A DNA stretch of 64,000 bases from Saccostrea echinata. Taxonomy: Eukaryota. The notes beneath the pieces were generated by a model that saw only the letters and a list, made by a program, of their open reading frames with translations, did no database searches and had not been told where the DNA came from. A program made the position numbers and the translations under genes. The stretch spans positions 20,026,001 to 20,090,000 of the forward strand of contig NW_026889805.1 of the NCBI RefSeq assembly GCF_033153115.1, given 5' to 3'. This document shows, piece after piece, positions 2,569 to 47,545 of this stretch (the first letter of the stretch is position 1; each line of letters opens with the position of its first letter).

Positions 2569-5405
2569 ACAAGAGACGGAAATTGCACAGATGAATAGAG
2601 AACTAGATAAAGAAAAAAAGGAATGCAAAAATCTAGAGGAAAAATTGAAGAAATGTACGGATGAAAAAGAAAGGTAATTTTTTTTTAATGAATTACACAT
2701 TTTTTTTAGCAGTTGACTTTACATTGGGTGAAGGTAGTGTGAAGCAATGTCAATCACCGTTAAACAATTCTTTTCAGCCAAGCGACAGAAATCGCAATGT
2801 TGAATAAAGATCTTGAAAAAGACAGAAAGGAATGCGAGAATCTGCAGAAAAGACTTGATAAAAATACGGAGGAAATTGAAAGGTTAACATTACAGCCGAA
2901 AAAATGATACTTATTTGTAAATGTCAAGAAATATTTGTCAAAATGATAAAATATAATACTTTTCTAATTACCAGTAAAGTTTATTCTCATAAAATTTCGT
3001 TGTTCTTTATAATGAGATATTGAAATGTGTGAGGAAAGATATATATATATATATATATATGTCAGTGTACTATGCATGTAGTTAGTGATACGGAAAAGGA
3101 TAAATATTTATCTCTCTTATTCTTTCTCCCTATCCCTCTCCCTATTTATTTAATGTGTAAAAATGTTAACAGTGCAAGTTCTGATATTAATTACAAAAAT
3201 TTTAGGAAAAAAGAAACCATTAAGGGTTTAGAGAGCATAATAGAAGAACGGACAGCAGAAAAAGAGAAGTGTGTATTAATTATAACCATTATGATAATAG
3301 AAAAAATAGATATTATAATTTTTTTATGTTTATGATAAATTTTATACTGATTTTACTTTCCCTGTTTATTAATGCTTTGTTTTTCATCATTTTCGTCTTT
3401 ATGATTTTGCTCAAGTCATAACTACTAGTATTCAATTAAATTTCATTTTATTTAAACTTGCGTTGAAAAAAAAGAATGTTTGAATTAACGGTTTTCTTCC
3501 AGATGATAACGAAATTTTCCTTAAATATCTAGTAAATGGTATTTTTTATATAAAGGAAATGCAAAAAAAAGTATTGTAACTCTGAGAAATTCCGATCTTG
3601 TTTGTAACCCTAATTTTCGATTAATCTACAGATCGATTCTTGAAATAGAAACCTCCAAATCCTTCATAAAGAAATTGGAAAAAGAAAAGAAAGCACTTCA
3701 AGAAGATGTAAAGTATGTACATATATAACTATTTTTAAGGGAGTCTTTGAAATAAAGAGTAAAATAATACATCTGCATTTTGATTTAATTGAACTAAGTT
3801 CATGCAAAAACATAGATCAACAGAAAAATACTTTTGATTTACACGTATTTTATATGTCTGAATCCAACTTACAATTCAGTATATGGTTTCTTATTTTGAG
3901 TGAAGTTTATTTTTATTACTTTTTAGTTCACCTGAGTTGAAAGCTCAAGTGAGCTTTTCTAGTCACAATTTGTCCTTCTGTCCCTGTACCTGTCTGTTCG
4001 TCCGTCTGTAAACTTTTGACATTTTCGACGTCTTCTCAAGAACCACTTGGCCAATTTCAGTCAAACTTGCCACAAAGTATCCTTGGGTAAACGGGATTCA
4101 AGTTTGTTCAAATGAAGGACAAAGGGGAGATAATTACAAATTATTAAAAAGTTAATGGCATCATTTAAAAATCTTCTCCAGAACCACTGGGCCATGAAAG
4201 ATGAAACTTATTTGGAAACATCCTTAGGTAGTGTTAATTCAAGTTTGTTCAAATCATGTTCCCCGGGGTAGGGCGGGGCCACAATGAACGATCAAATTTT
4301 GACATAGGAATTCATGGGAAAATATTTAAAAATCTTCTTCTCAAGACCCACTGAGCTAGGAAAAATGAAACTTATGTTGAAACGACTGAAGGTAGTGTAG
4401 ATTCAAGTTTGTTCAAATCATGACCCTTGGGGGTAGCACGAATCGACAACGGACGATCAAATTTTTAGATAGGTATACATAGGAACAATCTTAAAAATCT
4501 TCTTCTCAATAAAAGCAGAGCCATGATTGATCATATTTATATGGAAGCATCATCAGGTAGTGTATATTCAAATTTGTTCAAATCATGAACCCCGGGGGTA
4601 GGGTGGGTCCACAATGGACGAACAAAGTTTTACATAGGAATACATAGGTAAAATCTTTAAAAATCTTCTTCTCAAGAACAGCAAAGCCATGATTGGTCAT
4701 ATTTATATGGAAGCATCATCGGGTAGTTTAGATTCAGATTTGATCAACTTATGACCCCTGGATAGGATGTTGCCTCAATAGTGAAGATAAAACTTATAGG
4801 AAAAGAAATACTTAAGCCTTGATTTGTCAAAGAAATATGGAAGCATCCTAAGTTAGTGTAGATTCAAACCATGCCCCTCCCCTTGCTAGTTGGGGGTAGG
4901 TTGATACCATGCACATGAAATACTGGCCCATGGGTCTCTTGTTTTTTTTTAACTTTTGATCTCTGTCATACCATTTTTATATGTCGTAGTCAATCATACA
5001 TATGAATTTCATCAAACTTGTAGGTTGATATCTAAAACTTTTCATCGCTATATATACGAGGGGTGATTAAAAAGTTCGCGAACTATCTCTATATTTACAA
5101 GCAAAAACTTTAAAAATAAACAGAAACTTTCAAATTCGGTAACCGCTCTTGAATTCACTTTCAATTTTAACGTAATGTTACTGAAACAATTTACAGAAGT
5201 CCATAGCAATTTTGTGACGTGAACCAGGCTATTGTGACGTCTACTACTCTCGCGACAGGAATGGGGTCAATTACTTTAAAAAGTAATTAATTAAATTACA
5301 ATTACTTTTACTTTTTCTACAATTAAATTACAGGCTTTCTAAGACTTGTAATTAATTAAATTACTATTACTTTGCAAAAGTAATTAATTAAATTACAAAT
5401 TACAT

Positions 5406-5437
<32 letters not shown>

Positions 5438-8400
5438 TTTTGAAAATTTTTATAATCCTTACAGAACATCATTTATTTGTATATAAGCTCAGCCTCTGCA
5501 CAAACAGTACAAGAAATGCTATAGGCATTGTGTATCATTGTGGTTTAATTTATAACATTTATTTACAAAACATTAAAGAATCTCTTAAAGAACTATTCGA
5601 GATCAGTTTGATGCAGTTTCCACCACACAAAACCTACATGTACACAAATTGCATGGCTTATGATATTTGATTAAAACTGGGTATTTTAATAGAGTAACAT
5701 GAGTCGCAACTGTAACCCCTCAAATTAAATATTTCCTTTGAAGGTAACCTGAACATTCTAAGTTGCTATTTATGTTCAACAATTTTACTTCATAAATAAT
5801 ACTTGTACAGAAGAAAATTCATTCATAAATATCTGTTTAGATGTTAAAATGATTATCAAATCGAAAGTTTTTCTTTTCTAAAGCTAGCGGAGCATTTTAA
5901 ATTGAAATAGTTATCTCCATTGGCTTTGTCTTCTAAATCAGGGAATGAATATCTCTTTAGAGTAGTTGATTTGTTTTGATTGCAATTTACAGCTGTGATC
6001 CGGAAGGCAATTATCTCTCCCCAACAAGAGAGAACTTAATTAATGACACACACCTTCTTTTTCTTTATTATTGATCAAACAACAAAGATTGAAATATAAT
6101 AAATGTGTGTTTCATAGCTGAATAGACCAAAGAAGGGTGGTTCAAAATTCAGATTTATAAACATAAATAAAAAAAAAATTCAAAATTTACATAATGATTA
6201 GAAAGAAACTAGATTATTATTTATTTATCAAACCAATCATTTAATTATTTGTATGTAAACATTAACTTAAGATTTTGTTTTTAAAATTGAAGGATTGAGG
6301 ATATATTTTACAATAACATAAAAAAACCCAGTAAAGTTGGGAGGTACAATGTAGTGGTGACAATATGTCATGAATATACCATGAGTGTGTATTATATAAA
6401 GTAATTGAATTTAATTAAAAAATTAATTGACATTTCATGGTATTTTTTTCAGTGTAATTAATTAAATAATAATTACATTTAATTGAAAAAAAAATTCAAT
6501 TACAAATTACTTCCAATTACTTCAAAAAATGAGTTATTATTACTCTTAATAAGAGGTTAACTCCTTACTGGAAGAAGAAAAAAAAATGTAATTAATTACA
6601 GTCAATTACAATTACTTTTTTCAATTACCCTATCCCTGTCTCGGGAGTTTTCTTTCAACGAACGAGTGCGGGAAAATGCACTAAGTCTCCGAAGAGGTTG
6701 AATATGATAACTAAAGTGTTCCAAGGAATGCATGTGTCGCCTGTTTTGTAGCTTCATTAAAGATGTAAATAAATCTAAGTTTAGTTAGATATTTATTTAC
6801 TACTTCCATGATGGTTCATGCAGAAAAAAAACATCCACACATAGTATAAGACTGCGATAGAATCTGACAATGATAGAAAATATGATTCTTAACCCTAAAA
6901 TGAAGAATTAAGTTAAAGTTATCATAAATAATTATTTATCATTTTACATGCATTAATACGTATTTCAAAGTCTTTTCTCCAATTGTCAGTCTACAAGATC
7001 CATTGTGGGATCCATATCCCGATGTTAGTTCATAGTATTTCAGTATCAGTTTGTGTGGTAACTGAATATCATACAGTTTCAAAGTACAGTATCATGAGCA
7101 CATAAACATGTAAAAATGCTAATTATCAACACCCCGCCTCTCAAAATTCAAAAGACTTACGTTATATTAAACTGTCCGGGGTATATTATGCAAAGTAGGT
7201 CAAAGGTCAAGGTGAAGTGAATTGTAACGCTGGTAATTTTCATGATGTTTAATGACAATTAGTGCACATGCTAAATAGCGTAGATTTACCTCTTAAATGT
7301 CAAAAATATGATGTATATTGGCACTATTCACTTTTTTGTTAAGTAGGTCAAAGGTGAAGGTCAAGGGTCGTGAGGCCGGTAACCACGACAATTCACAAAA
7401 GCCATAGTGCCAAGCAATGTATGTGCAAAATATCAAGTCCATATGTCTTACAGTTCTTGAGATACAAGGTGTGACAGACGGACAAACGGACAGCTAAACA
7501 GACGGACAGACAGACAGACACCGGGTAAAGTGATCCCTCAGTGCAGCTCTGCTCTGCAGGCGACACAAAAAGCATGGCGACGACAGGGAAATATGAAGTT
7601 TTATGGGCCTGTCACGTGATAATCTAGAATCAATAACGCGTTGTATAAATTAATTATTATGAGGTATAATAAAATAATTTGTACAGGGTTTATGAAGTAC
7701 AAAGGACTTGCAAGAATTTCGGTCATTAATTGGATTGATTGTTTTAGTGAAGGAAGGGAGATGGTTAAAAATGATGTTTATTCCGGTGCCCAGTAAAAGT
7801 ATGCTGGGAAAGAGATGTGGCATTAGTTGAGCAATTTGTTATGAAAGATCGCCAAGTTACAGTTAGAAAAATACTTGAATGGCATAACAATGAAATATAA
7901 ATTAAATCCCTAAAATATCATTTACTTCAGATTTTAAACATATCAGATATGATAAAGAGAACGCATCCATACTTGATTCTCATTTAAAAAACGACGCATC
8001 CAAGACAGAGGAGTCGGGTTGTGTTGGTCACCATGCTCATTCTGGTAAAATATATCCTTATCCACCCACCCTATTTCTGAGATTTGGCCATTGGTGACAA
8101 AAGGACTATTCTTGTTTAAATATAATCAGCATGGTAAAACAAATAAGATTCAGGAAAATCTTTTAGCTGCTGTTAGCTGAACACTACGGAGCATGTCACG
8201 TGACTGCCTGGACCACGTGTTTCGCGCATGAGCAGAACGATGACAGATGTGCATTAAAATCTTTAAAAAACTTTAAAAAATAATACACACTGAAACCTAA
8301 TTTTGTTTCTTTTATTGAAGTAATTCAATTAATTCGCGAACTTTTTGATCACCCCTCGTATATGACATGTATATGTGAAACAAAATGATAGTGTTCCTTC

Positions 8401-11400
8401 GTAATTTCATATACACGCGTATTTAAAATGCATGTTTGAAATAACTCTCGATATTTTTATTGAACTTTTAAAGAAATTTAAGACATGAAATTCAGAGGCA
8501 GACGGAAATAATTCAAGAGTATACAAGAGCGTATGAAAATCAACATAGAAGTCTGGAAGAACAGAGGCGATCTATTGATAAACTACAGAAAAGTTTATCA
8601 GAAGAAAAAAAGGCGAAAGAAAACGCATTAAATAGGTAGATCTACATTTTCGAATTCAAACTATCTGTTTTATTAAAAAAAAAATACTTTTCTCTTCTTT
8701 TGATGTACAAAAACCAATACTGAATCACTTTAGACTTAGTGCTGCTGCAGCCAATAGACTTAGAGACCAGAATCCCGGAATAACAGACCTAAGTGATCCG
8801 AACCGTCCCCTGAAATTAGCTGAAAAGGTGTCCGAGTTGTATGACAACGAATGGACAAACGCCATGGAGAATTTAGAATCTGAGCTTAATATTCAAGAGG
8901 AAAAAGGGATAAAAATTTTATTAAAAATTATTAAAGTGAGTATATCTTCATATTCTATGGTCGATATACAAATGTAATGACCTTGTTTGCAAATACCAAC
9001 AAGGGTCGGATTTTGATAGACAATGCCAATTGTTTGGCCATTGTTTTTATACTTAATTTTGACTACGGATTACTCGTTTACCCAATCAATGTAGAGGGCC
9101 AACGTACGGCAGCTGTTACCAATCGACAGGGGATACTTACTCCTCCCAGGCAACTGATCCCTCTTCTGGTGTCGCAAGGGGTCCGTGTTTTGCTTTCTTT
9201 TATGAGATTGACCACTGATCGTTATCTTCTTTAATTATAATGTTATATGTATGTTTAATGCATTAAAAGCACTATGATTTAAGGATCTCCGCTTTATCCG
9301 ACAGGAAGGATGATTCTCAAAAATCATTGTTTAATTTAAAAAGTCTCAAAAGGAAGCTTGAAATTGAAATATTTTCATACAACAATTTTCATATTATTAG
9401 GCTTAATTCTCAATATGATTCAATCTTCTTTGAAGTCTTAGAAACAGTATTTTTAAAAATTTCACATTTTTACCCCATTCAAGAACAACAATAATAATTT
9501 TTAGATAAATCGAATTTCTTGACAAAAAAAAAAAAACAAAACACACAAACAACAAACAAACAAACAAAAAAACCAAGCGCAAGCAATTTTTTTTCCAAAT
9601 GTCTGGATACCTATACTATTTTATCCTAAAATATATTTGTTGATCAAATTTTGATTAGAAAATGCATAGCTGGTGCATTTATTCCTGAAATTATATCTAA
9701 GATTGATAATTTTCTCTTTATAATATGATAAACTTTAATGATGAACTTTGAAGAAATACCGTCGGTAAATACTCGTACACATTTCTTTTTTGAATTCAGA
9801 GACATTTTTGTGAGCCTTATCTATTATTTAACTGCTGCTTGTCAGAATCTGAGGAAGTTGTCTTCAATATTTAAAGCAAATACTTTTAAAAAAGAAAAAA
9901 CATTAAATGTATCCTAATTTGCGTGGCCGACGGAACTTGACAAAGAAAGGGGTCACTTTGACCATCGTATTTTTTTTCGCCCACCTGTCTGTGTATCTGA
10001 AGAAATCTCATTCACCTGTAAGCCCTGAGCACTTGAATTTGAGGTGCTAAATTGTTACCAGTTTTACCAACCAAATGAAATAAATAAGCTCTTCTTTGCT
10101 TAAAAAAATAATTTTTTAATGTGTTAATTCAAGTCCATACTTGTTAATCACTTAAAACAAATTGTAGTTTTTTGGTAGATAAATGTACACGTTGTTTTGC
10201 AACACATTGTATCATACATGTTAAGAAAATTTTTTTTAAGTGTTTATGTTTCAAAATTGTTATTAAGGTATTTGGAAATTAGCCACTAAAATAAAAAGTA
10301 CTTTCTCACAAAGGGAAGTAAAGTACATACTGTAGTGTCTGAGCTTTTCAAATAATATAGAAGTACATGTACTGGTACTATATTCGTACCACTGCAATAC
10401 AATGTACTTACACATCAGTATTTATTATTTTAACGTTAGGGACGTACAAATTTAGTCATTTAACTCAATTAGACATTATGTGTCACATTATTTGTGAACA
10501 TCAAGATTTTACAAACTTAATGTTTTATATGAAAAAACACTGTAGAATTAATTGTGAATTAGCTAAGTTTATAAATTTTGACTATTAAAACTATTTATAT
10601 TTATACAGAATGTTTTTGACGCATGCGCTGAGTTTGGAGACAACCACCTACAATCCTTCCCTGACATGTTGATTTTACCTCCATCTTTTATAAAGAGAGG
10701 GGAAGAAAAAATGGTAATTTTAAAATATGATAGAAAATTAAAAGCAAGGCTTACAAATATTCTAATTACCACAGTTGATATTATGTCTTTGTTAGCGTCA
10801 CATACACCAATAAAGATGTTTAAAATCAGCTGTGGGGACTAGATTCAGCGTATACGGGGAAAACAACCAACATAATAAGTAATATGTGTCTAGCAACCCC
10901 GACAACATTCCTTTGTACTCTCAATGCATTTGTTTTTATTTTAGATCAGCATTAGAGATCTACCCTCTGAAATGCTTAAACCAATGAAAGATTTTCGAAA
11001 ATCGCATGCAAAACACGCAATAAATCATTTGCAAAAGGTATGTAACATGTATTTTTTCTAAACATTATGATGTTTTATTATTTGATATCAATTACCGATT
11101 AAAGAACTACGCACGCTAACTCTCCATCCCCGCTTACATTTTACACCCATTTATTTCAATACTAATGTCAATTTGGCCGTAAAATATTTGTTGAATGCAA
11201 AGAACAGTTCAATGATAATTGACTGATAATTTTAACGCCAGCGTTAAATAGTTAATTATCCCTATTTCCAGCTCTTTAAATAAGGGGGGTAGACGATATT
11301 TTCCATTGAAATCGGGCTTTAAAGCATCACCACATTTTTAAATATTCTTGGATATAAACAGATGTTCCTTAAATCTTTTCTAATGTTTTACACATATAAA

Positions 11401-13151
11401 TTAAACATATATTATTAGCAAAATACAATGTTTTTAGTTGCAAACCCTTTTGATATTGGTGAAAAATAATCATTGTTGTAGTTTTTTGTCTGTAAACATG
11501 TGCCTCCCCCCCCCCCCCCTTGAAACACAAAAAGCTTTGGTACGAATTTGTGAAATGACAGTCCATATTACCTGTAAAATGGAATTTTTGTTTCACGGGG
11601 GGGGGGGAGAGAGAGAAAAAGAGAGAGGTGTTTTAAAAATGTTTTCCGTTTCTCTTGATTTCTATAGTGAAAAACTCAAGGTTTACCAAAATTACAATCT
11701 GATTAAAATCAGATCTTTGTTACGCTCCGAAATTCTGATGGTCGCTGTACAGCGACCATCAGAATTTCGGAGCGTAACAAAGATCTGATTTTAATCAGAT
11801 TGCCAAAATTATAGAGTTATCTCTCTTTGTTTTCCCAAAAAAGTAATGTTTTATGAAAATTCATATAAATATCTATATAAGTATGAAAAATCATTCAAAT
11901 GTGTTAACTTTTGAAAATTGACTTGGAGGTAGGCGGGAGAACCATACTATCGTTCGCAGTTCTTTGACGCAATTGCAATACCAACTGGACAAAGCTTTTA
12001 GGCATAAATCTTATTTGAATAAAGATTTGCTAGATAGATGATTCTGTATTTGCCAATGAATTTATGAGTATGTTGGGTGTGAAAGGCACTTGTGTAATTA
12101 CCCGGTGTCATTTTATTAGATTTAATGGAAAATCTAGCATTTACCATATGCTCTTATACGACTGTTTTTTTCTTTTATAACCTTGAAATAAATTTGCAAA
12201 GTCGTGTCACTGTTTCATGCTAGCATAAGTATTTCCCTGTTGTTTTTGTATATATTTCTCAGTTTAATCATTGAAAGGGAAAATGAAGTAAAACTGTGTT
12301 CAGCTCTGAAGATTTATTATTTTCTTTTGAAGTTCTTTTCCACAGATGAAGGAAAGCCGAAATTGCACATAAAGGAAAAAGTATTCAAGGCCTGTGAAGA
12401 ATACGTGAATAAGTGTATAGAGCTTTGCTGGATGATGCGCATTCAAGATCCACCAATTTACATGGAAACAGAATACCCGACTAATTCAGAATTTGACTCA
12501 AATAAAATGCGATCGTACACAAAGGCAGGAAAATTCATACATTTTGTTGTATGGCCTACTTTTTTCCTGCACAAGGATGGTCCACTGTTGGCAAAAGGGG
12601 TAGTGCAAGGGAGCAAAACAGAAATAAAAGATATAAAAGAAATCAATGGCGATGAAGAGTGTAGTTCGTCAAGCTCTGACTCTGACGGTGAAGAATTTGA
12701 TGACGCCCGGTCACGAACAGATTCACAGCCAAGGGATAATCTAAAGAAAACCGCCTCTCAAGATGACGCGGAGCCAAATCAGCAAGGGAATAAAGAAATC
12801 TCACAAGAAGCAGATGGAACATCAATCAATGAAACGAATGACAAACCAGAGGGACCAAATGACACCAACGACATCGCAAAGGGGCCAAATAACACCGACA
12901 CCACACCAGAAGAACCAAATAACACCGACACCAAACCAGAAGAACCAAATAACACTGACGAAAAACCAAAGGAACCAAATAATGATTTGCATATCAACCA
13001 ATCAAAGCCGCAAGGAAGTGAAGCAGCTGATCAAGAGGAACCAGTTAACTCAGACGAGACAGAGGGAGAAGACGGGAGTGAAAGGGCTGCTGAGCAGAGA
13101 GATGCATCCGTTGACAAAACACAAAATAAGGCAGAGGAAACAGATGTATAG
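2569..13151 (+). CDS. MIEAP/SPATA18-domain coiled-coil protein, paralogue 1 (about 580 aa; acidic low-complexity tail; 5' end uncertain)
   Basis: GT-AG exons that stay in frame: 2569-2673, 2778-2882, 3206-3268, 3632-3712, 8474-8635, 8734-8935, 10609-10713, 10945-11037, 12333-13151. They encode a K/E-rich coiled coil, then RLRDQNPGITDLSDPNRPLKLAEKVSELYDNEW, then CIELCWMMRIQDPP...FVVWPTFFLHKDGPLLAKGVV. This resembles the SPATA18 pattern C..AFAMQ..EPP...VWPAL....VIMKG (recalled, not searched). A phase-compatible start exon is possible at 674-684 (ATGTTTATGAG|gt), or the gene may start upstream of the window. Confidence 0.82.
3921..4950 (+). mobile_element. Helentron-associated non-autonomous element (HINE) with about 166-bp internal satellite array
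   Basis: Starts TTTTAGTTCACCTGAG..AGCTCAAGTGAGC, then a (GTCY)n-like tract, about 5 tandem units (AAAATCTTCT anchors near 4169, 4329, 4493, 4660), and ends with GGCCCATGGGTCTCTTG and a T-run. This is the architecture of oyster Cg170-type satellite-bearing elements. Confidence 0.8.
5256..6638. mobile_element. hAT-type non-autonomous element nested in the mariner
   Basis: Termini CAGGAATGGGGT / ACCCTATCCCTG, subterminal AATTAC repeats, 8-bp TSD TCTCGCGA / TCTCGGGA (one mismatch). Confidence 0.75.
6709..7572 (-). mobile_element. HINE-like element nested in the mariner
   Basis: Subterminal inverted repeat TGTGTCGCCTG (6733) / CAGGCGACACA (7557), adjacent (GACA/GACG)n microsatellite, internal AGGTCAAAGGTCAAGG motifs. 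Confidence 0.65.
9055..9232. repeat. Fragment of a common oyster interspersed repeat
   Basis: GC-richer CGACAGGGGATACTTACTCCTCC..CTGATCCC..GGGGTCCGTG tract recalled as an abundant ostreid repeat; class not determined. Confidence 0.4.
11101..11966. mobile_element. MITE (Kolobok-like termini)
   Basis: Imperfect TIR AAAGAACTACGCACGCTA / TATCGTTCGCAGTTCTTT with TTAA / TTGA flanks. Confidence 0.55.
11695..11802. mobile_element. 108-bp perfectly palindromic mini-transposon with 9-bp TSD
   Basis: Perfect inverted repeat centred on TGTACA, flanked on both sides by CCAAAATTA. Confidence 0.85.
12835..12985 (+). repeat. Coding 30-nt tandem repeat (EEPNNTDTKP-like, about 5 units)
   Basis: CCAAATAACACCGAC units with a 30-nt period in the tail of paralogue 1. 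Confidence 0.85.
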
Positions 13152-17454: not shown

Positions 17455-18008
17455 AGGGGCCTGGACATAGTTGCATTGTTTACAATTTTAAAATTCTATT
17501 TTAAATTTAAAAATATTTTCAGTTTAATTATTTAAAATTACCTGAATATTCTTAGAGATTCAATGACACAGGCATTCTTCATAACATCTTGTCAAAATAT
17601 TGTCTGTAAACAGGTCACGAGCTCTGTTATTGTTAATGTTTGTTTTACCGGGTGTGATCAATTTTTTTAGTCTGCACACATCACTGAGCACCTAACAATA
17701 CTGGTGAGTTAATTTTGCTTTCTCGCATTTCTACTCTACATATTCTTGATTGTAGTTTTCATATTTTTCATTAATATACAACGAAATCTCTACTTTTCTT
17801 AAGTATTATGGATAAAGTTTACCTCGTGAAAGTGCAAGGTTTTGTGTCAATCAAACGCGTACCGAGTTTTGATTATTTCCAGATAAAAGGAGTTTCTAAA
17901 CAATCTTTCACTATACTTCTGTGTGAATTGCTCTAGCAACATACAAGTCATGACAATATATCGAAAAGTTTAGAAAATATGACCTTTAAATCTGAGTCCA
18001 AGCCCCGT
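17455..18008. mobile_element. Internally deleted copy of the TTAA fold-back MITE at 57534
   Basis: TTAA-AGGGGCCTGGACA start. The segment 17603-18005 aligns with 57912-58319. Confidence 0.7.
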
Positions 18009-18030
18009 TATTAACAACCAAACTATATTA

Positions 18031-18770
18031 CCTCAATTATGCAAATGACATTGTCCTCACGTCAAGCAGTAAAAAACAAATACAACAGAAAAAATTGAAC
18101 ACCATATCTATGTCAACTGGATTATCCATTAATTCCGCCAAAACAAAAGTAATGAGATTAAACAACATCAATTACCAGAAAATAACAATCAATGGGAGCA
18201 TGATCGAAGATACTGACACCTTTGTCTATCTTAGTGCAACTTTTTAGTAAAGAAGGAGGTGGACAGACAGGGGGATCCGGAGAAGACTGGGTCATGCTAA
18301 GGTAGCTACAGCAGACTCCCCAAGATAACTTTCAATTCGGACCAAATTGAACATCTTCGAGTCAAACGAAATATCTGCTTTGTTGTATGGCTCTGGAACA
18401 TGGAAGATGAGCAAAGAAGATAAAAACTGCTTGCCATCTTCCTCCATAGATTTCTAAGAAAGATTATGAGGATATTTTGGCCGGTGAAAATCGTAAATGA
18501 TAGAGTAAGAGAACTAGCAAACATGGATAAGATCCGTAGAAATGGATAGGACATATGCTGAGAAAGAGAACAGATTGCAATGACAGAATAGCATTAACGT
18601 GGAGGGATGGAAGAGCTAAGGAAGACCAAAGGAAACATGGAGTGGAACCGTAGAAAAGAAAGGAAACAACTTGAATTTAAATTGTGGAGTGAAGCTGCCC
18701 TCCAAGAGAACTAATCAATGGCCCTATTCTCTACAGGGATATGGAATTAAGTCCAGTTTAAGTCAACTCA
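18031..18770 (+). pseudogene. 3' fragment of an RTE-clade non-LTR retrotransposon
   Basis: Frameshifted RT C-terminal motifs (YANDIVL, INSAKTKVMR, FVYL, KWIGHMLRK, RIALTW, GRPKETW) followed by a TAAGTC-type tail. Confidence 0.75.
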
Positions 18771-19152
18771 ATGAAGTATAGAGGCTTTTATTATATAATT
18801 GTATAAAAGATGAAATAAAGAGATGCCAAAGGCTTTGACAGGTTGGAAACGAATGAATATTACACGTATCAAGAGAAAATAAAAGAGCAGAAATAAGAAA
18901 ACAAATACATGTATTAAAAAAAAAACACGCAAAACTATTTGGGTAGTGAGAGAAAGAGAGAGGGAGGAGAAGAGAATCGAGAAATGCAAAACTTAGCATT
19001 TCGTTTTGGTGGTTCTTTTTATAACATACTGTTGAGTTTAAATTTTGACATTTATACCATCTTATCTTTTTATTTTTATTTTATGTTGTATATTGATTTT
19101 TTTTACATTGATTGTCATATATAACAGTTTTTATTGTATTTTGTTACCTTCA

Positions 19153-22100
19153 TTTGTGACCCGATAGCGGTGTTTTTCTTTGATGTGTGCTCTTCTGTAT
19201 TAGCAATACAGAACGGGACTACAGTTGGCAGAGCTACTTTCCGTTCTGTATTAGCCCTATATATATACTGTCTTGTATTGGCCAACTGTTCTATATCTAA
19301 AATACAGCATGGTCTATAAATAAATCTAATTCAATTTATCAAAAGCACGTACAAATAGTAAATGATGTTTTTTTTTCCTATTATAAATTTTGGAGAAATA
19401 TTTCCTTAGGAATGTAAAATGTCAAAATTTCTAAATCACTTTTTAAAAATCATTCCACACAGAATCTACACGTTATTTCGATCCAAACGAAAAAGGAAAA
19501 TTCGCAATTATGGAAAACATCCTATGTTGGATAAATTCCTGAAAACCTGTTTCCTCTTCCTGCTTTTTGTGTCCCCTTCAAAATAGTAAAGCCAATGGGT
19601 TCACGGATGCAGCATTAATTAGGTGAAATTCGCAATCCCCCTCCCCCTATTTTCCACTCTTCTCGTGCAAACTCAATCAAGTCCATTTTCAGGGTTTTTT
19701 TTTATTTCATCTTAAATCCTTATCCCTGAAGACTGTTGCACATCTCTTTCACTTCGTTTAATGTTGCATTTCATTAAGAAACATAAAAATCCGTAACATT
19801 ACAGTCCATCGAAAAACTGTCTGTATCGCCTGTATGTGTATCTAGTTTAACTTAGATTTTAAGACCCCTGAAATAAATTAAGATTAATCTCCATCTACAA
19901 CAACGTTAAATCGTCCACCTTATCAATTAAGACTGACTTCAAGTCTGTTACGTCTACCCCGTTGTCAAAACTAATCTGACTCCATGGAAATACGAGGGGT
20001 GATCAAAAAGTTCGCGAACTATCTCTATATTTACGAAACCACAATTCAGATCAAAATGAAATTTGGCACACATTTAGTCATACACATGTTCTATAAATAG
20101 CATATGTTATATAATATCTTGCTCCGTGTTTGTGACGTCACAATGTGAAAATGACGTCAATATGTAGGTGACTTGTGACAAAAAATGGTTGACTCATTCG
20201 TACTCGAGCAACGAATGGCTGTAAACTTTAACGTATATATCGGAAATTCCTTTGCAGTAGAATATGATAATTTGTACAAGGTTAATGAAGACAAAAGACT
20301 TACCAGAAGTTCCATCATTAATTGGATTGATTGTTTTAGTGATGGCAGGGAGATGGTTAAAAATTATGTTTGTTCTATTGCCCAGCGAAAGCAAAGCGGT
20401 AAAAAGATGTGTCCTTTGTTGAGCAATTTCTTTTGAAAGATTGCCATGTTACAATTAGAAAAATAGTTGAATATCTGACCAATAATATAATTATTAAATC
20501 CCCAAAATATCGTTTACTTTAGACTTTAAACATACGAGATATGAAAAAAAGAAGGCGTCCATACATTTTTACACATTCGATAAACGACGCTCCCGAGACA
20601 GAGGACTCGGGTTGTGATGGTCACCATAATTAATCTGGAAAGGGATATCCTTATCCACCCATCCTATTGCCGAGATTTGGCCATTTCTGACAGGTGGTCT
20701 GTTCTTGTTATAAAAAATAACATACATGGTAAGAAATATAAGACTCGGAAAAATCTCTTAGCTTCTGTGAACAGACCGCTACGGAGCATGTCACGTGACC
20801 GCCTGGATCACGTGATTCGCGCATGGGCAAAACAATGGCAGATGTGCATTAAAATCGGAGAGGACTACTTTAAAAAATAATGAAAACTGAAACCTCATTA
20901 TATTTGTTTTAAGGAAGTAATTCAATTAGTTCGCGAACTTTTTGAGCACCCCTCGTATATATACTGCAGATGTATACTCCCCGTCGAGGACTCACCTACA
21001 GAGAGAACAAACGAACTCTGGCGGAAGTTTGGATGCTGCACAGTTATAAAGTGGGCGGTGCTTTTTTTTTTTTTTTTTTTTTTTTTTTTTGATTGATCGT
21101 GTCACAAATCATTAAGAGAACTCGACATGCAGTTTCTGTATCGTAGATACAAATTTGGGGTTGGAGAATCGTGCTACGCACTTGTCCACCCCCAAATTTG
21201 TATCTATGATACAGAACCCGTCTCGTTCTCTAAATAATACTTAATCGACCTTCTATGGTATATTTCTTCGGTTGTGCCCCTCCTGACAACCCAACTGACA
21301 GCTGAGAATTAGGTGAAGCAATGCTGGACCAAATAATAGTTATTTGCCATTAGAGTTTTTTTTCTGTAAATCGGACCAGACTGTTATAAATTTGCAACAG
21401 TGAAAAAAAATACACTATGTATATCTTTTTTGTGACACGAAAGCGGTGTTTTCTTTGAAGTTTGCTGTTCCGTATTAGCAATGCAGAAGGGGACTACAGT
21501 TGGCGGAGCTATTTTCCGTTCTGTATTAGCCCTGTATACTGTGTTGTATTAGCCAACTATTCTGTATCTAAAATACAGCACGGTCTATAAATAAATCTGA
21601 TTCAATTTATCAAAAGCACGTACAAATAGTTATTACCGATTTTTTCCTATTATGAACTTTGGACTAATTTTCTTATGAATGTAAAATGTCAAATTTTCTC
21701 AATCACTTTTAAGAACTTATTCCACATAGAATCTACACGTTATTTCGATCCAAACGAAAAGGAAAAATCGCAGTTATGAAATCATACTGTGCTGGATAAA
21801 TTCCTCAAAATCTGTTTGCCTTCTCTGCTTTTTTGCGTTCCCTTCAAAATGGTAAAGCGTTTTTACTGTCGCATTTCAATAAGAAAATAAAAATCTGTGA
21901 CATCCGAGTCCACCGAAGAGCTGTCTGTATCGCCTGTATTTATACCTCGGTAAACTGAGATTTTGAGACCCCTCAAATATATAGCAGGATCAATCTCCAT
22001 AGTGTCATAAAACTACTAGAAAGTTAAATCGTCCACCTTATCCATTATGAAATCAAGTCAATTTACGTCTACCTTGTTGTCAAACCTAATCTGACTGAAT

Positions 22101-22634: not shown

Positions 22635-22649
22635 CAAACCGAAAGTAGA
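22635..22649 (+). promoter_or_regulatory. IRF-element-like 15-mer upstream of the paralogue 2 ATG
   Basis: CAAACCGAAAGTAGA, identical to 47510-47524, ending about 20 nt before the predicted ATG. Confidence 0.5.
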
Positions 22650-22668
22650 TACTTTTTACCGCCTTGTA

Positions 22669-40000: not shown

Positions 40001-43000
40001 GCCTTTCCGACATACTCTGAAAAGATTTTTTTCTGAGCTTGCCGAAATTATCCAGGAAAGTGGTGTAACTAGATGTCTAGAATCTTGGCATTATATGACC
40101 TAAGTTTTTCTTGTACTTTTATGTGTAGGTTAGACAATAAATAAAAAAAAATCAGAATCCGGATCTAGACTGGTATTGCATGTCTCTAACGCAAGAAAAG
40201 TTAACGTACATTCGCATGCTATACATTCTGGTTGCAATTCTCCAGTGAGTAAATATTCATTTGTTATTTTTGAATGACCAATACGTATTCTAGAAATAAT
40301 CACTTCGTCTTGACGTTTCAAGCCGAAATCAGATGATTTGTTGACTTTGTTTTCTATAGCATAAAGCTTACTTGTATCACAAAATTCCCAATAAATCAAG
40401 ACAAATGAAATACCCATTTAAAATTCCTTTTCTTTCAGACAATTTTCCAGTAAAAGAATAGTAAAATGATTGAATGTTTTCTTTAACAAGAGGCCAAAAT
40501 GGCGCGAAACTCCGAATGATGACGGAACGTCATAATCAGTTTTACCTGTGACGTAATGTGTTAACAGTAGGCCCAAAATAGGCCCATGGCACTTAACGTA
40601 GTTTTTGAAAATAGGCCCAAAATAGGCCCGCGGCACAAAGAATGTTAATGACACTACATTGCGGATTTCAAACAAGTGGTATTTATTGTAATAATGTTCA
40701 GTAACAAACTCAGCATCATGGAGCCATGCACTTGTTTTATAAATCCAAGTAGTGAAATATGGTGCAGAAGTTCCATTTTCCTTATGAAGAATACATGTAA
40801 CTCGTTTACTGTAGTTGCTGGGAATACAGACACACGAGGAAATCATCGAGCAGGAACAAGCTCTTGCTGCCGAGGAAAATTTTCGCCATAACACAAACAG
40901 AGATCTGAGGAGATGGAATGACGCCTTTGAGGTGTAAGTAAAAATGGTTAAAACATTATTTTATACACCGATATTGTTGAGGGTCAAAACCATGAAATTT
41001 ATTTAAGAAATAATGTATCATTTTTAAACATCTATCGGGATATAAATACGGGTTGGTCACGAGATTCGGGCTTTATGGTAAATTTGATCTCGTACCAACC
41101 CGTATTTATATCCCGATAGATGTTTAAAAATGATACATTATTACTTATATTTACATTTATGACTTATTCATATTTTATGTTTTCCTGATTATAATCTTTA
41201 ACGCGTGAAATGTTTTATTTTTCAAACTCAACGGCATGTATTTGATCCATTGATTGCGCGTCGACCCTTTATGACGTCACTGAGAAATTACGTCGAACGT
41301 TTATGACGCGAGGAACCCGTGTTTATACGGATATAGATACGCATTGCTTTTAATAGTGTTATATAAAAGAAAACATTTGCAAATGTAAATATACTAAAAT
41401 GAAACAATTTCTTCAGGAAGAAAAAGTATGAAGACGAAACCAACCAGCTTAACAGTCGATATCAAGACGAATTGCATAAAATTAGAAAAGAACATGAAAG
41501 TGTTCTAAGAAGGTAATTCTTATATATGAAAGCAGGTTATTTGTTTCTATCGTATTGTACAATTAATTTCCTTTGACTGTTGAAGTGCAGTTTTTTGTTT
41601 TAAAAATATTTGTCACTTTCAGTTTGAGAGAAAAGGAAATTCAACTGAAGAGGTAATGTTACTCATTTTGAAAGATTATTTTCTTGAACAGTTTCATTTA
41701 CTTGTTGCTAAAAACTAAATATTCATTACTCCAAAGTATTAACTGAAGCATATCAAACATTGTCCTAGGCGGGGGAGAAGGAAGCGTATTTTAAACTTTG
41801 AAATTTGTTTATTGCAGTTTATCTGAAGAAAAAGAAAATCTGTTGACAAGGTAATATGAATGATTAATTGAATGACTTTCTTTTGTTTCAATTCTTATTT
41901 TTATTAATACATAAGGCTCATCATGAATAACAAGAAATAGTAGGTAACATTAATGAATACGTTTTTTAAGATCTGATAAAATGTTATTATTTGTAACACT
42001 GTTCAGTAAACTCGGACTCTCAATGCTTTCATATTGAATACATAGAATAAACATGTTGAATATAATAACATGTATTAAGAAATTTCAGAGGGAGTTCCAC
42101 AGCATTTTAGTTTTATTCAAATCATTAATTTATAGGCTAAGTCAGGTTGCAGGAGCCAAATTACGAGACAATAACCCGGCCGTGTCCGACCTCAGTGACC
42201 CCAATCGACCCCTGAAAATTTCAGAAAAAGTCAGTGAGCTTTACGACAATGAGTGGACAGACGCAATGGAGATCTTGGAGAATGACTGCAGTGAGACCGA
42301 GGCAATAGAAACACTACTCACCATTATTCTGGTAAGTTTTATTTCTGACCAACATTGAATTTCAAGGTATTTAAAAGAAGAAATATATTAAAAAGCATTT
42401 TTCCTTCTTTTTTAAAGAAATGTTTTAGACTTTGTAAAGATTATTCCAGTTTCCAGTTGAAAACTATGACTACGGCTCTCGTTCTAAATGAAAAGGTAGG
42501 TTATATTTGATTTTGTTTCTTTAAGTATATAGGATATGGAATTTTTCTTAAAAACAGGTTATTTTATATCTATTACAACACTTCATTTTACAGCTGACAC
42601 CTGATCTTACTTTAGCAGAAAAATATGCCAAAGATATACAAAAGAGTTCCTCAGCCTGGATGTTGAGCGATTCTTGTCTACATTCTGTAATGCTTTGAAT
42701 TCCTATTATATCATTTTGTGCACTTTATTCATATACTTAACAGAAGATACAAAGCAACGATTCTGTTTCTTTGATTTTCAGATAATATGGCAAGAAGTTG
42801 AAAAGGCTGTTGGAATGCAAAATGCAAATAAATGCAAACCTTATATTCACAAATGTGTGCAGTACTGTTGGTACATGTGTATCCAGGACCCTCCAATGAC
42901 TGCAGTTGCTTTCCAGAAAGGGACAGAATTCAATAGCAATGGAATGAAGTCTTTTACTAAAATAGGACAGTTTGTTGACTTTACAGTATGGCCAGCATTA

Positions 43001-43690
43001 TACCTTCACGAAAACGGTCCCTTGCTTTCAAAAGCAGTAGTACAAGGAACCAATGTTCAAGGCACCAATAAACCACCTCCAGAAAAAAATTACGAGGACA
43101 GGAAAAATAAACAGACCAACAATCAAGAAATTCCTACTAGAAATTACCGAAAAATGGAACCTCAGAACTATCGACCCGCGGAAACGGCTTACCGTGCGAT
43201 ATCAGATGATCGGTACATCGAACCACATCTTGAAAGAACGAGGAAAGGATACCCTGAAATTCGCGATACCAAACATGGAAATGTTGGACAAAGAGACTAT
43301 CGACCAGAATTTGTTGAGAGTCAATACTCAGACCCCCTGCCAAACAGAGGCCAATACATGTCGTACAGTTCCCCACAACCTCCCCATCTGCCAAACAAGG
43401 GGCGATCACAGCATGTTCAATATACTACACAGACTGACATTCCAGCATCAGTTTATAGAAATCAGGCATATCCTTCAAACACGAGATATGAGCATCATGG
43501 GAACCACCCACAATATAGACCTGAAAAACAGTTTCTTCAGGCAACCCATAGCCGGAGTGCTCCAAATGAGTATTATAATGAAACTTATGAACAAGCTCCT
43601 CCTAAAACACAATATAAAAGACACGGCAATCCGCATGCGTCACGAACATATTTCAAAAATAACAAGGAATACAGATCAACAGAACTATGA
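37019..43690 (+). CDS. MIEAP/SPATA18-domain protein, paralogue 4 (608 aa; Y/P/Q/R/H-rich tail)
   Basis: Exons 37019-37122, 37287-37455, 40815-40933, 41417-41512, 41623-41652, 41818-41850, 42136-42331, 42418-42495, 42594-42686 and 42782-43690 sum to 1827 nt with an open frame. The 119-, 33-, 196- and 78-nt exons match paralogue 3 in length. Confidence 0.87.
37184..37197 (+). promoter_or_regulatory. IRF-element-like motif in intron 1 of paralogue 4
   Basis: AAAACGAAAGTAGA, 62 nt into intron 1. An ETS-like ACAGGAAGT also lies at 37001-37009, just before the ATG. Confidence 0.45.
37835..40644. mobile_element. 2.8-kb non-autonomous TTAA-inserting (piggyBac-like) element in paralogue 4 intron 2
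   Basis: TTAA at 37831-37834 and 40645-40648, imperfect TIR CCCTTTTGCTGCCG / CGGCACAAAGAATG. The uninterrupted target site survives in an adjacent duplicate at about 37694-37740. Contains a CAGGCCCG..CGGGTCTG MITE at about 38406-38714. Confidence 0.7.
40200..40400 (-). pseudogene. C-terminal fragment of an RNase H-bearing non-LTR retrotransposon (I-group-like)
   Basis: RQDEVIISRIRIGHSKITNEYLLTGELQPECIACECTLT matches the RLRIGH...PxCxxC zinc-knuckle region of such ORF2 proteins. Confidence 0.7.
41001..41150. mobile_element. Long hairpin MITE
   Basis: Near-perfect inverted arms of about 55 bp (AATAATGTATCATTTTTAAACATCTATCGGGATATAAATACGGGTTGGT). Confidence 0.75.
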
Positions 43691-44282
43691 ATTTAGATAT
43701 TTAAAGTTATGCTACTTGTGTCAAGAAATTGAAATGAACATGCTTAAATGCATAACGTTTACCCTTTAAACATCCGGAATGTTCTCAGCGCAATACTCAT
43801 GACAGCCATATTCTTAGTAAAAAGGAATAGCCATTCCGTTTGCAATCGATTTATTGATTATTTGCAAAAGAACTGATATCACAATGTTTTGTATTTGGAA
43901 TGTATTCTTTGGATATATTTTATGCGTCCTATTGTATATCTTGACCAGAACAAAAACACTGAACTATTGAATTCACGTTATCAATGTATATGATTTAAAT
44001 TTTAAATAAATTAAGAATATTCAAGATATAAGGATTGGTCTTTATGACTTCATAGAAAAGTCACATTTAGCTAAAATACATTTTTATCATCGGTATATGC
44101 ATACAAGTTCTGAATTTTCGCGTTACGCTTTTCAATATATATTTATATAGATTAACATTTAGCGCGCTTAATTCTGATTTGTATCCTACTATAATGTATG
44201 TTGCACGAAATATTTTTTTTTTTCAATACTTTAAACTGTACACACAGTCACAGATTAGGAGACACAGATTAAATATATCGGG

Positions 44283-46509
44283 TTAGTTATTTAGGAAATC
44301 AAATCTGGCTCGAAACGTCTGCCCAGTCGTTCTCTCGCTTGCTTCAACAGTAAGTTCTGTCTTACCAAAAATAAAACCAACAGACACGTTGTTTGACGCT
44401 TCCACGATATTACCGACATTAAGTATCATTTCTCCAAGGGGTTTACAACCTTCGTCGGTGACAAACATCGGATCTGTTTCCGATGACGAATACACCCTTA
44501 CGCGACTGACTGAAGATCCTCTTCCCATTGTAAATGGAACTGAGTGTACACATCCATGCTCCACTGACTCATCGCATTCCACATATTTGTGAAAAATGTC
44601 TTTGCACATAATCCCATTTGCTGTCGCAATTCTCTTTTCAGGTGGATGGTGTCCCTCTATAAATGGCTTGCTGATGGCTATGCCAAATGTAGAATGAGAA
44701 ATCCTAGATCTGATGGAGAGCGGCTTATGGCCGAATATGACAGCTCCTTTTAAGACCGTTAATCCAGCGTCACCAGGCGTTATTATCTTAATGTGGGGAA
44801 ACTGTTGCCTCAAGGTTTCTTGCACAATTGGTGATTCTGCAAATCCACCAACTAAAAGGAAAGTTTTCGTACCCCGAACATTCTGTACCAACAACACCTT
44901 TTGAAGATGCTCAATGAGTTTATCCAGAGGATCTCTGAAAAAGCCTTTCACCAATTCCGAGTCGATTTTAATTTTGTCGGAGATAGAACTTATTCTCTTG
45001 TAATACATTTCGTGATTTTCAACAGCTTCCTTGAAAGATCTGGATTTCATCTTCTCATACAATTCGCGTAAAGAAATAGGAACTTTGATTACAACGCGTT
45101 GTGGCATGTCTTCCTTGCATGTAACAGTTCGTTTCTTTAGTTCAAACTCTCTGAAAATATCCAAATAATCCCCGCCATGCTTTGAACGGAATTCTGCCCA
45201 AACCTCTTCTTCCACAATGTCGATCAAGAACTGTTCATAAGCTGCATCTACCTTTGTTCCACCCCAAGCCCCGCCTGTTGCACGGTGTAATTCCCTTAGT
45301 GTGCCATCATTGTCCACCTGATGGACGGTAATATCAGCTGTTCCTCCTGCAATTCATATTGAAATTGAAATCCCTTGCTAAATATAGGTTTTAAATAAGT
45401 TAACTATATAAAGTTTGACATTAGAATTTAACAGCAAATTATTTTTTTTTAAACTTTTCATACGAATAGTGATATATTCTAAAATGTGTACAAAGCTTTG
45501 AATTTGATGCAGCTACCTCCGAGATCGATCACCATGTACTTCGAACCCGAGTCAAACACATCAGCCCCAGTTGCATCTGGAATATGGCGACAAAAGACAG
45601 AGGCTGCTTCAGGTTCAAGTGCAATAATCAATTGGTCATTAGTAATATCTGCCTGAAGTTTAAACAAATTTGTTTTACTAGTATTTGGTATAAAACGGAA
45701 AATTTAATGCATATTATAATTGTTATTGATACGTCCTTTTCATATGAAGAAGAAAAAAGTGAACATTATGTTAAGACATCAATCTTTAAATCTAATACAA
45801 ATGTACACTTCTATATTTGAAAATAAAAATGACACTGCTTTTTAACAATGTAATTTCAATACATTTTTTTTTGTCAAAATAAAACCTTTTGTGCTGCTTC
45901 TCTCATGAATTGTTTTGCTGGCTCTGACCATATTGCAGGTACAGTTAAAACCCAACGAATTTCTGAATCTTCTATCTCGAAACCTTGCTGCTTCATTATA
46001 TTTAACGCATGGCTCTTAAGGTATGAAATACCGTGCCCAAATACAACTTTTGCTGGCAACTCCTTTCCGCTTGCGTCAGCTATTTTAGTATCCCTAGAAA
46101 GATGCTGTCGACAAAAAGAAGAACAATTAATTGTTCATTTCTTTTTCTGAAGGTACTTTGTACTTGATGATAATGCATTATCTTCTATATTTACCGGATT
46201 TCTGTGAAGAAGCATTTTGAATCGTCTGAAGAAATAGTATTCGTGATGCTCATCATCCACAGCTAGGTCTGCATACGTGTCCTCTGCTTCATACCCAAAC
46301 TTGTAGAATTCTTTATTTGGCTTCAGTAAGAGTGAACTCGGGGTTTTGGAAGAAATAAGTCCTCCTGAGGCAGGAATCCAGTTGGTAAAAGCATATATTT
46401 TTGTGGGGTCATTCTGGAATTGATTTAGGAGGGAAAACGCATACCCAGAGTACGTTGTCCCAAAGTCGATGGCTACAACAACTAAAGGACCTTCGTCTTC
46501 ATCAGACAT
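44283..46509 (-). CDS. HSPA12: Heat shock 70 kDa protein 12-like (atypical Hsp70, 577 aa)
   Basis: Coding exons 46509-46195, 46104-45886, 45652-45517 and 45346-44283. Actin/Hsp70 ATPase motifs IDFGTTYSG, IDLGGGTADIT (split by an intron) and LVGGFAES. HSPA12 signatures WVLTVPAIWSEPAKQFMREAA, ALEPEAAS and GGAWGGTKVD. No EEVD or helical lid. A versus B subtype cannot be assigned. Confidence 0.95.
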
Positions 46510-46537
46510 TATTATCAATGTGTCTGCTAGACAAAAA

Positions 46538-47167
46538 AAAAGGAAGCTCATGGGCTACAATGCTCATTTGGATCTCTCATCCTTCTAAAGAAACAACATC
46601 TTTATTGTGGCTTTAACTTGAAGTCTTTGTTATCAAGAATTTAAATAAGGCCTGGTGTTAAGTTTACAAAATGTAGATCCAGTTCTTCCTAATTTTTTTT
46701 ATGAACAAATGATGTTCCTGTTCTTCCTAAAAAAAAATTATGAACAAATGATGTGCAAAATTTTGTTTCCTTTTATAGTCCTACTTTGGCCCAAGAAGTC
46801 AAGATTTTATCAAAATTGAATCTGCACTATACTTTGATACAACTTATTCCAGAAATTAAGTTTTTACATATTTAGCCTCTTCATTTATAAAATCAAGATT
46901 GATCTTTGGTGGCCCCTTCTCAGTTACAAATGTAATTATTTAACAAAATTCTACATGTACATGTATATGGCAATGCCTTTATATCAAATTCCAAATTGTG
47001 ACCGCACTGTTCTCAAAGTTTTTTCTGCAAAATATACTTTGTATTCCATTGAAGACTTTATTTCCATTTGTGACTAAGTCCGAACCCTGGTTAAATAAGA
47101 TCTATAATTTAGCTTTTCTTGATTATCTCTCTTTGATGAGCACAGGGCCTTTAAATAAACAGTTGAA

Positions 47168-47198
<31 letters not shown>

Positions 47199-47240
47199 AT
47201 TCCATAATTGTGATGAAAGTATGGAAAATGTTTGAGGTGG
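46538..47240 (-). mobile_element. Degenerate HINE/satellite in the HSPA12 5'UTR intron
   Basis: Reversed terminal motif AAGCTCATGGGCTACAATGCTCA and satellite-unit remnants such as TGCCAAATTTGGTTGAAATTG. Confidence 0.55.
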
Positions 47241-47458
47241 AAATAAAACATAGCATTGTTCAATTCATCATTTACAACAAAACAGATACTTGGTGTTGAC
47301 ATTTAATTCGTACAGTTCGGTGATTCTGCATATTTTTACGTTTCAAATCTTTTAATAAATACTGTGTATCAAAAAGTGACCAAAGTTATCTTCCAAAAAA
47401 CTCTTTAAAAGAAAAATTAACATATTTTATGATAAGACGAAAGACATGTGATTCTTAC

Positions 47459-47545
47459 CTGCGCATTTACTTATTAAAATTTATTGTGGGGTTTTTTCAG
47501 AGTTGGTACCAAACCGAAAGTAGAAATTTTCAGTTTCGTTTTGAT
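47459..47545 (-). promoter_or_regulatory. Putative HSPA12 non-coding exon 1 and promoter with IRF/ISRE-type sites
   Basis: Minus-strand donor CAG|GTAAGA at about 47459 pairs with an acceptor about 20 nt upstream of the ATG. Just upstream lie CAAACCGAAAGTAGA (47510-47524) and TTTTCAGTTTCGTTTT (47527-47542), whose reverse complement contains GAAACTGAAA, the GAAANNGAAA ISRE core. Confidence 0.55.

Follow-up and report, generated by a model that had tools for sequence, protein, structure and literature searches.

A 64-kb stretch of the genome of the oyster Saccostrea echinata (C56:20026001–20090000 in a 923-Mb assembly; hereafter the window, with positions counted from its first base) carries four mutually divergent genes with the MIEAP domain (PF16026), all on the plus strand, and, convergent with the last of them, a gene for an atypical Hsp70 of the HSPA12 type. 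The bacterial and mitochondrial Hsp70s DnaK and mortalin work in pairs with the exchange factors GrpE and GrpEL1, and dnaK and grpE often adjoin in bacteria. The original prediction for this stretch, made from its letters alone, was of a metazoan DnaK/GrpE-like module in which MIEAP-like proteins serve HSPA12. Here we report that the MIEAP C-terminal domain is predicted to take a GrpE-type fold, that a confident complex model places it on the HSPA12 nucleotide-binding domain, and that the two families are linked in this genome more often than expected; we tentatively propose that Mieap proteins are HSPA12 cofactors. The main genes of the window are as follows.

8732–13151, plus strand: MIEAP gene 1 (P0148, 407 amino acids), placed by tblastn; exons 8732–8935, 10591–10725, 10945–11037 and 12324–13151, the last being the core exon by domain match.
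About 22668–26466, plus strand: MIEAP gene 2, a putative model from exon matches; mapped exons span 24894–26466.
Near 22668 (ATG) to near 22737 (GT donor), plus strand: putative first coding exon of gene 2, read from the sequence.
24894–25100, 25179–25430, 25526–25627 and 26161–26466, plus strand: exons of gene 2 by exon matches; the first encodes a heptad-rich coiled coil, the second a conserved DNNP...DLSDPNRP segment and the fourth the core.
31466–34782, plus strand: MIEAP gene 3 (P0008, LOC133172903, 396 amino acids); seven coding exons, with 97–100% tblastn identity over the unambiguous ones and the core exon at 34495–34782.
36974–43690, plus strand: MIEAP gene 4, a putative model from tblastn with P0003, P0136 and P0142; exons near 36974–37120, 37288–37458, 40797–40934, 41376–41513, 42059–42340 and 42740–43690, the last being the core exon.
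44283–46509, minus strand: coding region of the HSPA12A-like gene (P0016, 577 amino acids, 'heat shock 70 kDa protein 12A-like'), 100% identical over its large exon.
44283–45353, minus strand: large last exon of the HSPA12 gene, by match to P0016.
46528–47459, minus strand: putative intron in the 5′ untranslated region (5′-UTR) of the HSPA12 gene, bounded by a GTAAGA donor (about 47459) and a polypyrimidine-AG acceptor (about 46528).

A genome-wide six-frame scan recovers the core exons of all four MIEAP genes (gene 2 at C56:20052212, 55.3 bits). PF16026 also matches the open reading frames of gene 1 (47.8 bits, E 2.2e-12) and gene 4 (39 bits, E 1.1e-9) above a cut-off of 27 bits, and P0008, the product of gene 3, with 50.8 bits over profile positions 2–194. 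The core exons are 48% (gene 2), 44% (gene 1) and 67% (gene 4) identical to that of gene 3, bearing out the original prediction of four divergent MIEAP-like paralogues. The coiled coil that it foresaw is present as a heptad-rich exon in gene 2 and as a long helix in the structural model of gene 3. The database protein P0148 matches gene 1 at 99.6–100% identity across three exons and at 82% for 10591–10725. The C-terminal tails of the paralogues are wholly unlike one another: that of gene 1 (12640–13151) is acidic with PEEPNNTD-type tandem repeats, and that of gene 4 (43060–43690) is of low complexity and rich in Tyr, Gln, Pro and Arg. Judged by composition, the two look like swappable disordered modules.

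The HSPA12 gene reads on the minus strand from an ATG at 46509 to a stop codon at 44283–44285. It converges with gene 4 across a stop-to-stop gap of 592 bp (43690 to 44283), as against the roughly 590 bp first estimated, and its product ends in ...FDFLNN, confirming the absence of EEVD. In an alignment of the HSPA12 family DFGTT, E191, DxGGGT and GG are invariant, and these ATPase motifs are intact in the window gene. Together with a weak PF00012 match (28.1 bits against a cut-off of 20.6), an HSPA12A/B-like name in the source databases and bivalve orthologues at 50–60% identity, these features assign the gene to the HSPA12 subfamily. Right beyond the window, at C56:20092759–20097482, the minus strand carries another HSPA12 gene, a very divergent one (32% identity), and four HSPA12 and three MIEAP genes lie at C56:19.93–19.99 Mb. 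The window thus belongs to a mixed HSPA12/MIEAP array of about 170 kb.

The domain shared by the four MIEAP genes has a GrpE-type predicted fold. An AlphaFold2 model of P0008, built with 66 aligned homologues (mean predicted local distance difference test (pLDDT) 84.9), comprises a 100-residue helix (90–190), a helical region (203–335) and a six-strand beta head (341–391), which we call the long helix, the helical insert and the GrpE-like head. The last exon modelled alone (95 residues) reached a pLDDT of 95.6. When this short model was compared with 48,161 Protein Data Bank (PDB) chains using VIA-align, only four chains scored Z ≥5 and all were GrpE: 9bls_B (Z 6.6, root-mean-square deviation (r.m.s.d.) 4.5 Å, 85 aligned residues), 4ani_A (Z 6.3, r.m.s.d. 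3.9 Å, 83 aligned), 3a6m_B (Z 6.0) and 1dkg_B (Z 5.9). These chains align 79–85 of the 95 residues, about 90% of the domain, and stand more than 3 units above the best non-GrpE chain (Z 2.7). Consistent with this, the top ten Foldseek matches of the short model were all GrpE or GrpEL1 (E 3.6e-3 to 6e-2, probability 0.90–1.00), followed by matches at E ≥1. With the full-length model, Foldseek returned nothing at E ≤1e-3, and weak GrpE matches (E ≥0.05) made up 9 of its top 13. VIA-align gave GrpE chains Z 6.0–6.7 against the full-length model, covering 145–148 of 151–159 residues, and only GrpE chains spanned both helix and head (1dkg_B, Z 6.5, r.m.s.d. 4.4 Å, 145 of 151 residues). The GrpE-like character ascribed to the MIEAP core in the original prediction therefore holds at the level of fold.

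We then modelled full-length P0016 with P0008 residues 144–396 in three runs, alongside three controls. The complex scored 0.71 in all three runs, as against 0.02 for the best control. Of 78 solved complexes, 51 reach the mark that it passes, as do 2 of 108 mismatched pairs. At least 74% of contacts are shared between the runs, with a partner pLDDT of 81 or more. The predicted interface of HSPA12 with MIEAP, here the product of gene 3, is thus confident and its controls are clean. On the MIEAP side the contacts fall at residues 190–231 and 353–387, and 12 of the 38 contact residues occupy near-invariant columns of the family, against 3.9 expected (p 5e-5). Conserved residues among the predicted contacts include D196, R202, D215, N216 and K385. 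On the HSPA12 side they fall at residues 34–54, 290–297, 309–318 and 345–350. Mapping by sequence motifs and established Hsp70 numbering, and so approximately, residues 34–54 precede the conserved KTPS and correspond to DnaK loop 24–34, with its GrpE-contacting Gly32 loop. On the same approximate footing, residues 290–297 lie on the outside of the REFELKKRT helix; the counterparts of the Hsc70 adenine-pocket residues E268, K271 and R272 are on its inner side. The predicted interface would therefore bridge, approximately, HSPA12 lobes IB and IIB, where exchange factors bind Hsp70; bridging these lobes is how such factors act. The complex model supports HSPA12–MIEAP binding without demonstrating it.

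The two families are also linked across the genome. Six-frame scans of the whole assembly set lower bounds of 69 for the MIEAP core exons, which fall into 26 clusters, and of 117 for the HSPA12 large exons, which fall into 67 clusters. Of the 26 MIEAP clusters, six have an HSPA12 exon within 20 kb, as against 0.52 expected (p ~2e-4), and seven have one within 100 kb, as against 1.36 (p ~4e-4), when each cluster is relocated randomly within its own contig (with true lengths for C25, C56, C30 and C57). The reverse test linked 7 of the 67 HSPA12 clusters (0.52 expected). By comparison, neither HSPA12 nor MIEAP occurs within 20 kb of any of 95 C1q clusters (from the best 150 of 695 candidates) or 22 AIG1 clusters. 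Linkage enrichment is thus seen within this genome for the HSPA12–MIEAP pair and not for two other expanded families. When the linked HSPA12 exons are placed in one tree with 56 proteins of other bivalves, they are spread over separate, well-supported old clades; the clade of the window gene, supported at 100%, also holds proteins of Pinctada, Tegillarca, Mytilus, scallop and Mercenaria. The linkage is therefore not the product of one recent segmental duplication. At C57:6809088–6814457 a MIEAP gene stands head-to-head with an HSPA12 gene about 3–4 kb away; this copy is the nearest to the Pfam model among HSPA12-linked copies (87 bits) and is possibly the SPATA18 orthologue. Some HSPA12 and AIG1 matches are paired with equal or near-equal scores (C19 with C41, C19 with C23, C9 with C24, and inverted copies within C25); if, as may be, they represent haplotigs or recent duplications, the family counts are slightly too high.

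Within the window, three of the MIEAP genes (2, 3 and 4) and HSPA12 have in common a 14-mer, AAA(C/A)CGAAAGTAGA, at their 5′ ends. In its extended form, CAAA(C/A)CGAAAGTAGA, it begins at 22635, 31614, 37183 and 47510, the copy at 37183 having T for the first C. The copies lie as follows, that of HSPA12 within an inverted pair resembling the interferon regulatory factor (IRF) site or interferon-stimulated response element (ISRE).

22635–22649, plus strand: motif copy CAAACCGAAAGTAGA, which precedes the putative first coding exon of gene 2 by about 18 bp.
31614–31628, plus strand: motif copy CAAAACGAAAGTAGA, 47 bp past the first coding exon of gene 3.
37183–37197, plus strand: motif copy TAAAACGAAAGTAGA, within intron 1 of gene 4.
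47508–47552, minus strand: inverted IRF/ISRE-like pair CAAAACGAAACTGAAAA and TTTCTACTTTCGGTTTG, 50–95 bp upstream of the putative HSPA12 first-exon donor.

In genes 3 and 4 the motif is 47–63 bp downstream of the mapped first coding exon, and the GT donor below the HSPA12 pair probably ends a 5′-UTR exon. The shared element of the original prediction is upheld by four copies in the window, against 0.14 expected in shuffled sequence. A search demanding three exact 14-mers in the window returned none; one that allowed one exact repeat plus mismatches recovered the motif. Genome-wide, AAAMCGAAAGTAGA occurs 909 times, compared with 54 for its reversed control, and the motif is therefore a widely used element; against this genome rate, four copies per 64 kb still exceed the 0.063 expected (p 6e-7). 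The flanks do not align outside the motif, which is therefore not part of a duplicated block or transposon. The IRF-binding element, or ISRE, has the consensus core AANNGAAA or tandem GAAA repeats (GAAANNGAAA). The motif contains AANNGAAA; all four copies contain AAACCGAAAGT and AAAACGAAAGT; GAAACTGAAA adjoins the HSPA12 copy, and CAAAACGAAACTGAAAA, the inverted partner of that copy, contains a textbook GAAANNGAAA. By this established consensus the motif is a candidate IRF site, and AAAMCGAAAGTAGA looks like a widespread regulatory word of the IRF/ISRE type.

These findings suggest the following model. In each Mieap protein a long coiled-coil helix, which may mediate dimerisation, would be followed by a conserved helical insert (DNNP..DLSDxNRP..ELYDNEWT) and, at the C terminus, by a beta head of GrpE fold. 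Insert, head and the far part of the long helix would together dock on the HSPA12 nucleotide-binding domain, bridging a lobe IB loop equivalent to the GrpE-contacting loop 28–34 of DnaK and a helix and hairpin of lobe IIB. By docking at this predicted site, at which the nucleotide cleft is opened by GrpE and other exchange factors, Mieap would govern the ADP/ATP cycle of HSPA12, and would most probably do so as an exchange factor. The variable, disordered tails would set location or clients, and the shared IRF/ISRE-like element may allow joint induction in an interferon-like or stress response. We consider it quite possible, at somewhat less than even confidence, that Mieap is a real HSPA12 cofactor acting at the nucleotide cleft. 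With similar reserve, we read the window as a cluster of co-regulated genes, one for an HSPA12-type Hsp70 ATPase and four for Mieap-family cofactors. Mieap is a testable first candidate partner for HSPA12.

Several observations weigh against this proposal. All of the fold Z scores are below 8, a range that the tool itself flags as possibly reflecting a mere common arrangement. At the sequence level, PF01025 is not among the matches listed for 66 MIEAP proteins at E values up to 10, and hhalign gave the MIEAP alignment a probability of 0.2% against the oyster's own GrpEL1 exon. Sequence homology between MIEAP and GrpE was accordingly rejected; with a fold match but no sequence link, the domain is GrpE-like in fold and not a demonstrated member of the GrpE family. 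In the complex, conserved columns are no more frequent than expected among the contacts on the HSPA12 side (6, with 8.5 expected), the passing score may reflect the model's memory of GrpE–DnaK structures, and the model is silent on which paralogue binds which; the partner modelled was gene 3 and not gene 4, which immediately adjoins HSPA12. In the genome, 20 of the 26 MIEAP clusters are unlinked (no HSPA12 within at least 78 kb, or none on the contig), and the four largest MIEAP arrays (9, 6, 6 and 5 genes) lie 0.39–1.3 Mb from any HSPA12. Orientation varies, being head-to-head at three loci, tandem at two and convergent in the window, and the relocation null takes no account of gene density. 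Other linked loci yield a single copy of the motif in 194 kb, and among the matches listed none lies within 10 kb of about 14 HSPA12 genes on C1–C4. No MIEAP–Hsp70 fusion occurs among 164 MIEAP-family and 120 HSPA12-family proteins, a sign for which the original prediction proposed to look; six long MIEAP proteins carry no other convincing Pfam domain, with one marginal match to Ins134_P3_kin_N (E 3e-4). We found no literature linking Mieap/SPATA18 with Hsp70, HSPA12 or GrpE. The analogy to the dnaK–grpE operon is thus loose, the linkage being statistical and not obligate. The original interpretation is supported in part, by linkage within this genome, fold, predicted interface and motif, and not by orientation, fusions or sequence similarity; it remains computational.

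Three other explanations have to be set beside the cofactor model. The first is co-regulation without contact: both families would be interferon-like or stress-inducible and sit in shared chromatin domains, or under common IRF-type enhancers and bidirectional promoters, so that linkage and motif reflect joint transcription only. The motif common to three MIEAP genes and HSPA12, with its 909 copies across the genome, fits such an account, as do three other linked loci that are head-to-head by their coordinates. The near-absence of the motif from the other linked loci examined does not, and co-regulation leaves unexplained both the specific match to the GrpE fold and the passing complex model on conserved MIEAP residues. 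We regard it as rather unlikely to be the whole explanation.

A second explanation, which we rate as unlikely, keeps the binding but not the exchange: Mieap would be an adaptor of HSPA12 to condensates or mitochondria, a lock on its nucleotide state, an inhibitor or a client. The predicted interface includes a helical insert (202–231) that is missing from GrpE, each paralogue has a long, variable, disordered tail, and Mieap is reported to form condensates, all of which would suit such a role. The sole point against it is that bridging lobes IB and IIB is typical of exchange-factor docking, and it overlaps with the cofactor model, differing only in kinetic outcome. Last, and quite improbable, is chance adjacency of two large, tandemly expanding families on the same few chromosomes with old neighbourhoods persisting, for which speak the concentration of both on C25, C56 and C30, the many unlinked MIEAP clusters, the unconserved orientation and a null that ignores gene density and birth-and-death hot spots, and against which stand the six linked clusters where 0.52 are expected even within contigs, the lack of such linkage for the expanded C1q and AIG1 families, the several old clades of linked HSPA12 genes, and fold and complex results that are independent of position.

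Under the cofactor model, the comparison with GrpE and its Hsp70 is instructive in both directions. In MIEAP proteins, as in GrpE and GrpEL1, a long N-terminal helix leads into a further helix and a small beta head, which in the PDB matches only the GrpE fold; docking is predicted on lobes IB and IIB, and the genes are neighbours. On the other side, MIEAP proteins have no detectable sequence similarity to GrpE and carry an extra conserved helical insert of about 100 residues as well as long disordered tails. Their partner would be a cytosolic-type atypical Hsp70 lacking EEVD, with tens of paralogues on each side; linkage in the oyster is statistical and not obligate, and exchange by the oyster pair is a proposal. 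Human Mieap (SPATA18) has described roles in p53-induced mitochondrial quality control and condensates, and published work on it also concerns cardiolipin. All four window genes share its PF16026 domain and its architecture of coiled coil and disordered regions, but copies in the oyster number at least 69, and their N- and C-terminal regions are swapped. Outside animals, predicted structures in the ESM Atlas point to the C-terminal domain of plant GIL1/IRKI (PF24994) and to unnamed fungal proteins (template modelling score 0.71–0.78 by query); these are leads only, with feature scores of 0.78–0.80 that are below the tool's trust level, and no function relevant to Hsp70 is known for these proteins. 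The segment near PF24994 in the atlas is P0008 residues 300–396 (window 34495–34779), which hints at a wider eukaryotic superfamily.

Both families are known for their expansion in bivalves. In the excerpts of Regan et al. 2021 (PMC8382680) cited here, Hsp70 and Mieap are ancestral bivalve expansions, with 68.1 versus 4.4 and 53.1 versus 0.6 genes per species, respectively, and both are tied loosely to 'intracellular damage'. This accords with the expansion of HSPA12 stated in the original prediction, and the window gene is an HSPA12A-like member of the expanded Hsp70 orthogroup (OG10, PMC8382680). The linkage, the GrpE-like fold and a cofactor relation are not reported in those excerpts (PMC8382680), and the passages of a 2026 Hsp70 review that mention HSPA12A/B name no exchange factor or cofactor for them. 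In the literature on HSPA12 with ostreid herpesvirus 1 (OsHV-1), we found no induction data.

The window contains further features besides these genes. Transposon remnants lie at 7641–7796, 18095–18247, 20185–20880 and 40130–40417; they comprise pieces of a mariner-type transposase, found between genes 1 and 2, and reverse-transcriptase-like fragments, of which one sits within an intron of gene 4. A Ser/Thr-rich, mucin-like open reading frame of 241 amino acids, with no Pfam match, occupies 62958–63683 on the minus strand, and a run of 156 N stands near 49.5–49.8 kb. One pair of short reading frames lies ahead of gene 1.

2569–2676 and 2790–2900, plus strand: two short tandem coil-like open reading frames (TEIAxxNxxLxKxxKECxNL), from translation, with no homology support.

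The two are similar and may be duplicated upstream exons of gene 1, although P0148 begins only at 8732.

HSPA12A/B and Mieap/SPATA18 both have disease-linked phenotypes. To our knowledge neither has a clear biochemical mechanism, we know of no solved structure of a Mieap domain, and we found no paper proposing that the two are paired. If Mieap is a GrpE-fold partner of HSPA12, both mechanisms would become testable by simple binding and ADP-release assays, and, among the exchange factors or cofactors of eukaryotic cytosolic Hsp70s, the domain would form a fifth structural class next to BAG, Hsp110, HspBP1 and mitochondrial GrpEL. A wider generalisation, which we hold to be doubtful, is that the Mieap/SPATA18 domain is an unrecognised GrpE-fold co-chaperone module for HSPA12-type Hsp70s across animals, including human SPATA18 with HSPA12A/B, and that in bivalves the two co-expanded into tens of matched pairs forming an IRF-inducible stress and immune chaperone system. 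For the bivalves themselves, a Mieap–HSPA12 partnership would explain why Hsp70 and Mieap are the paired flagship expansions described in the cited parts of Regan et al. (PMC8382680).

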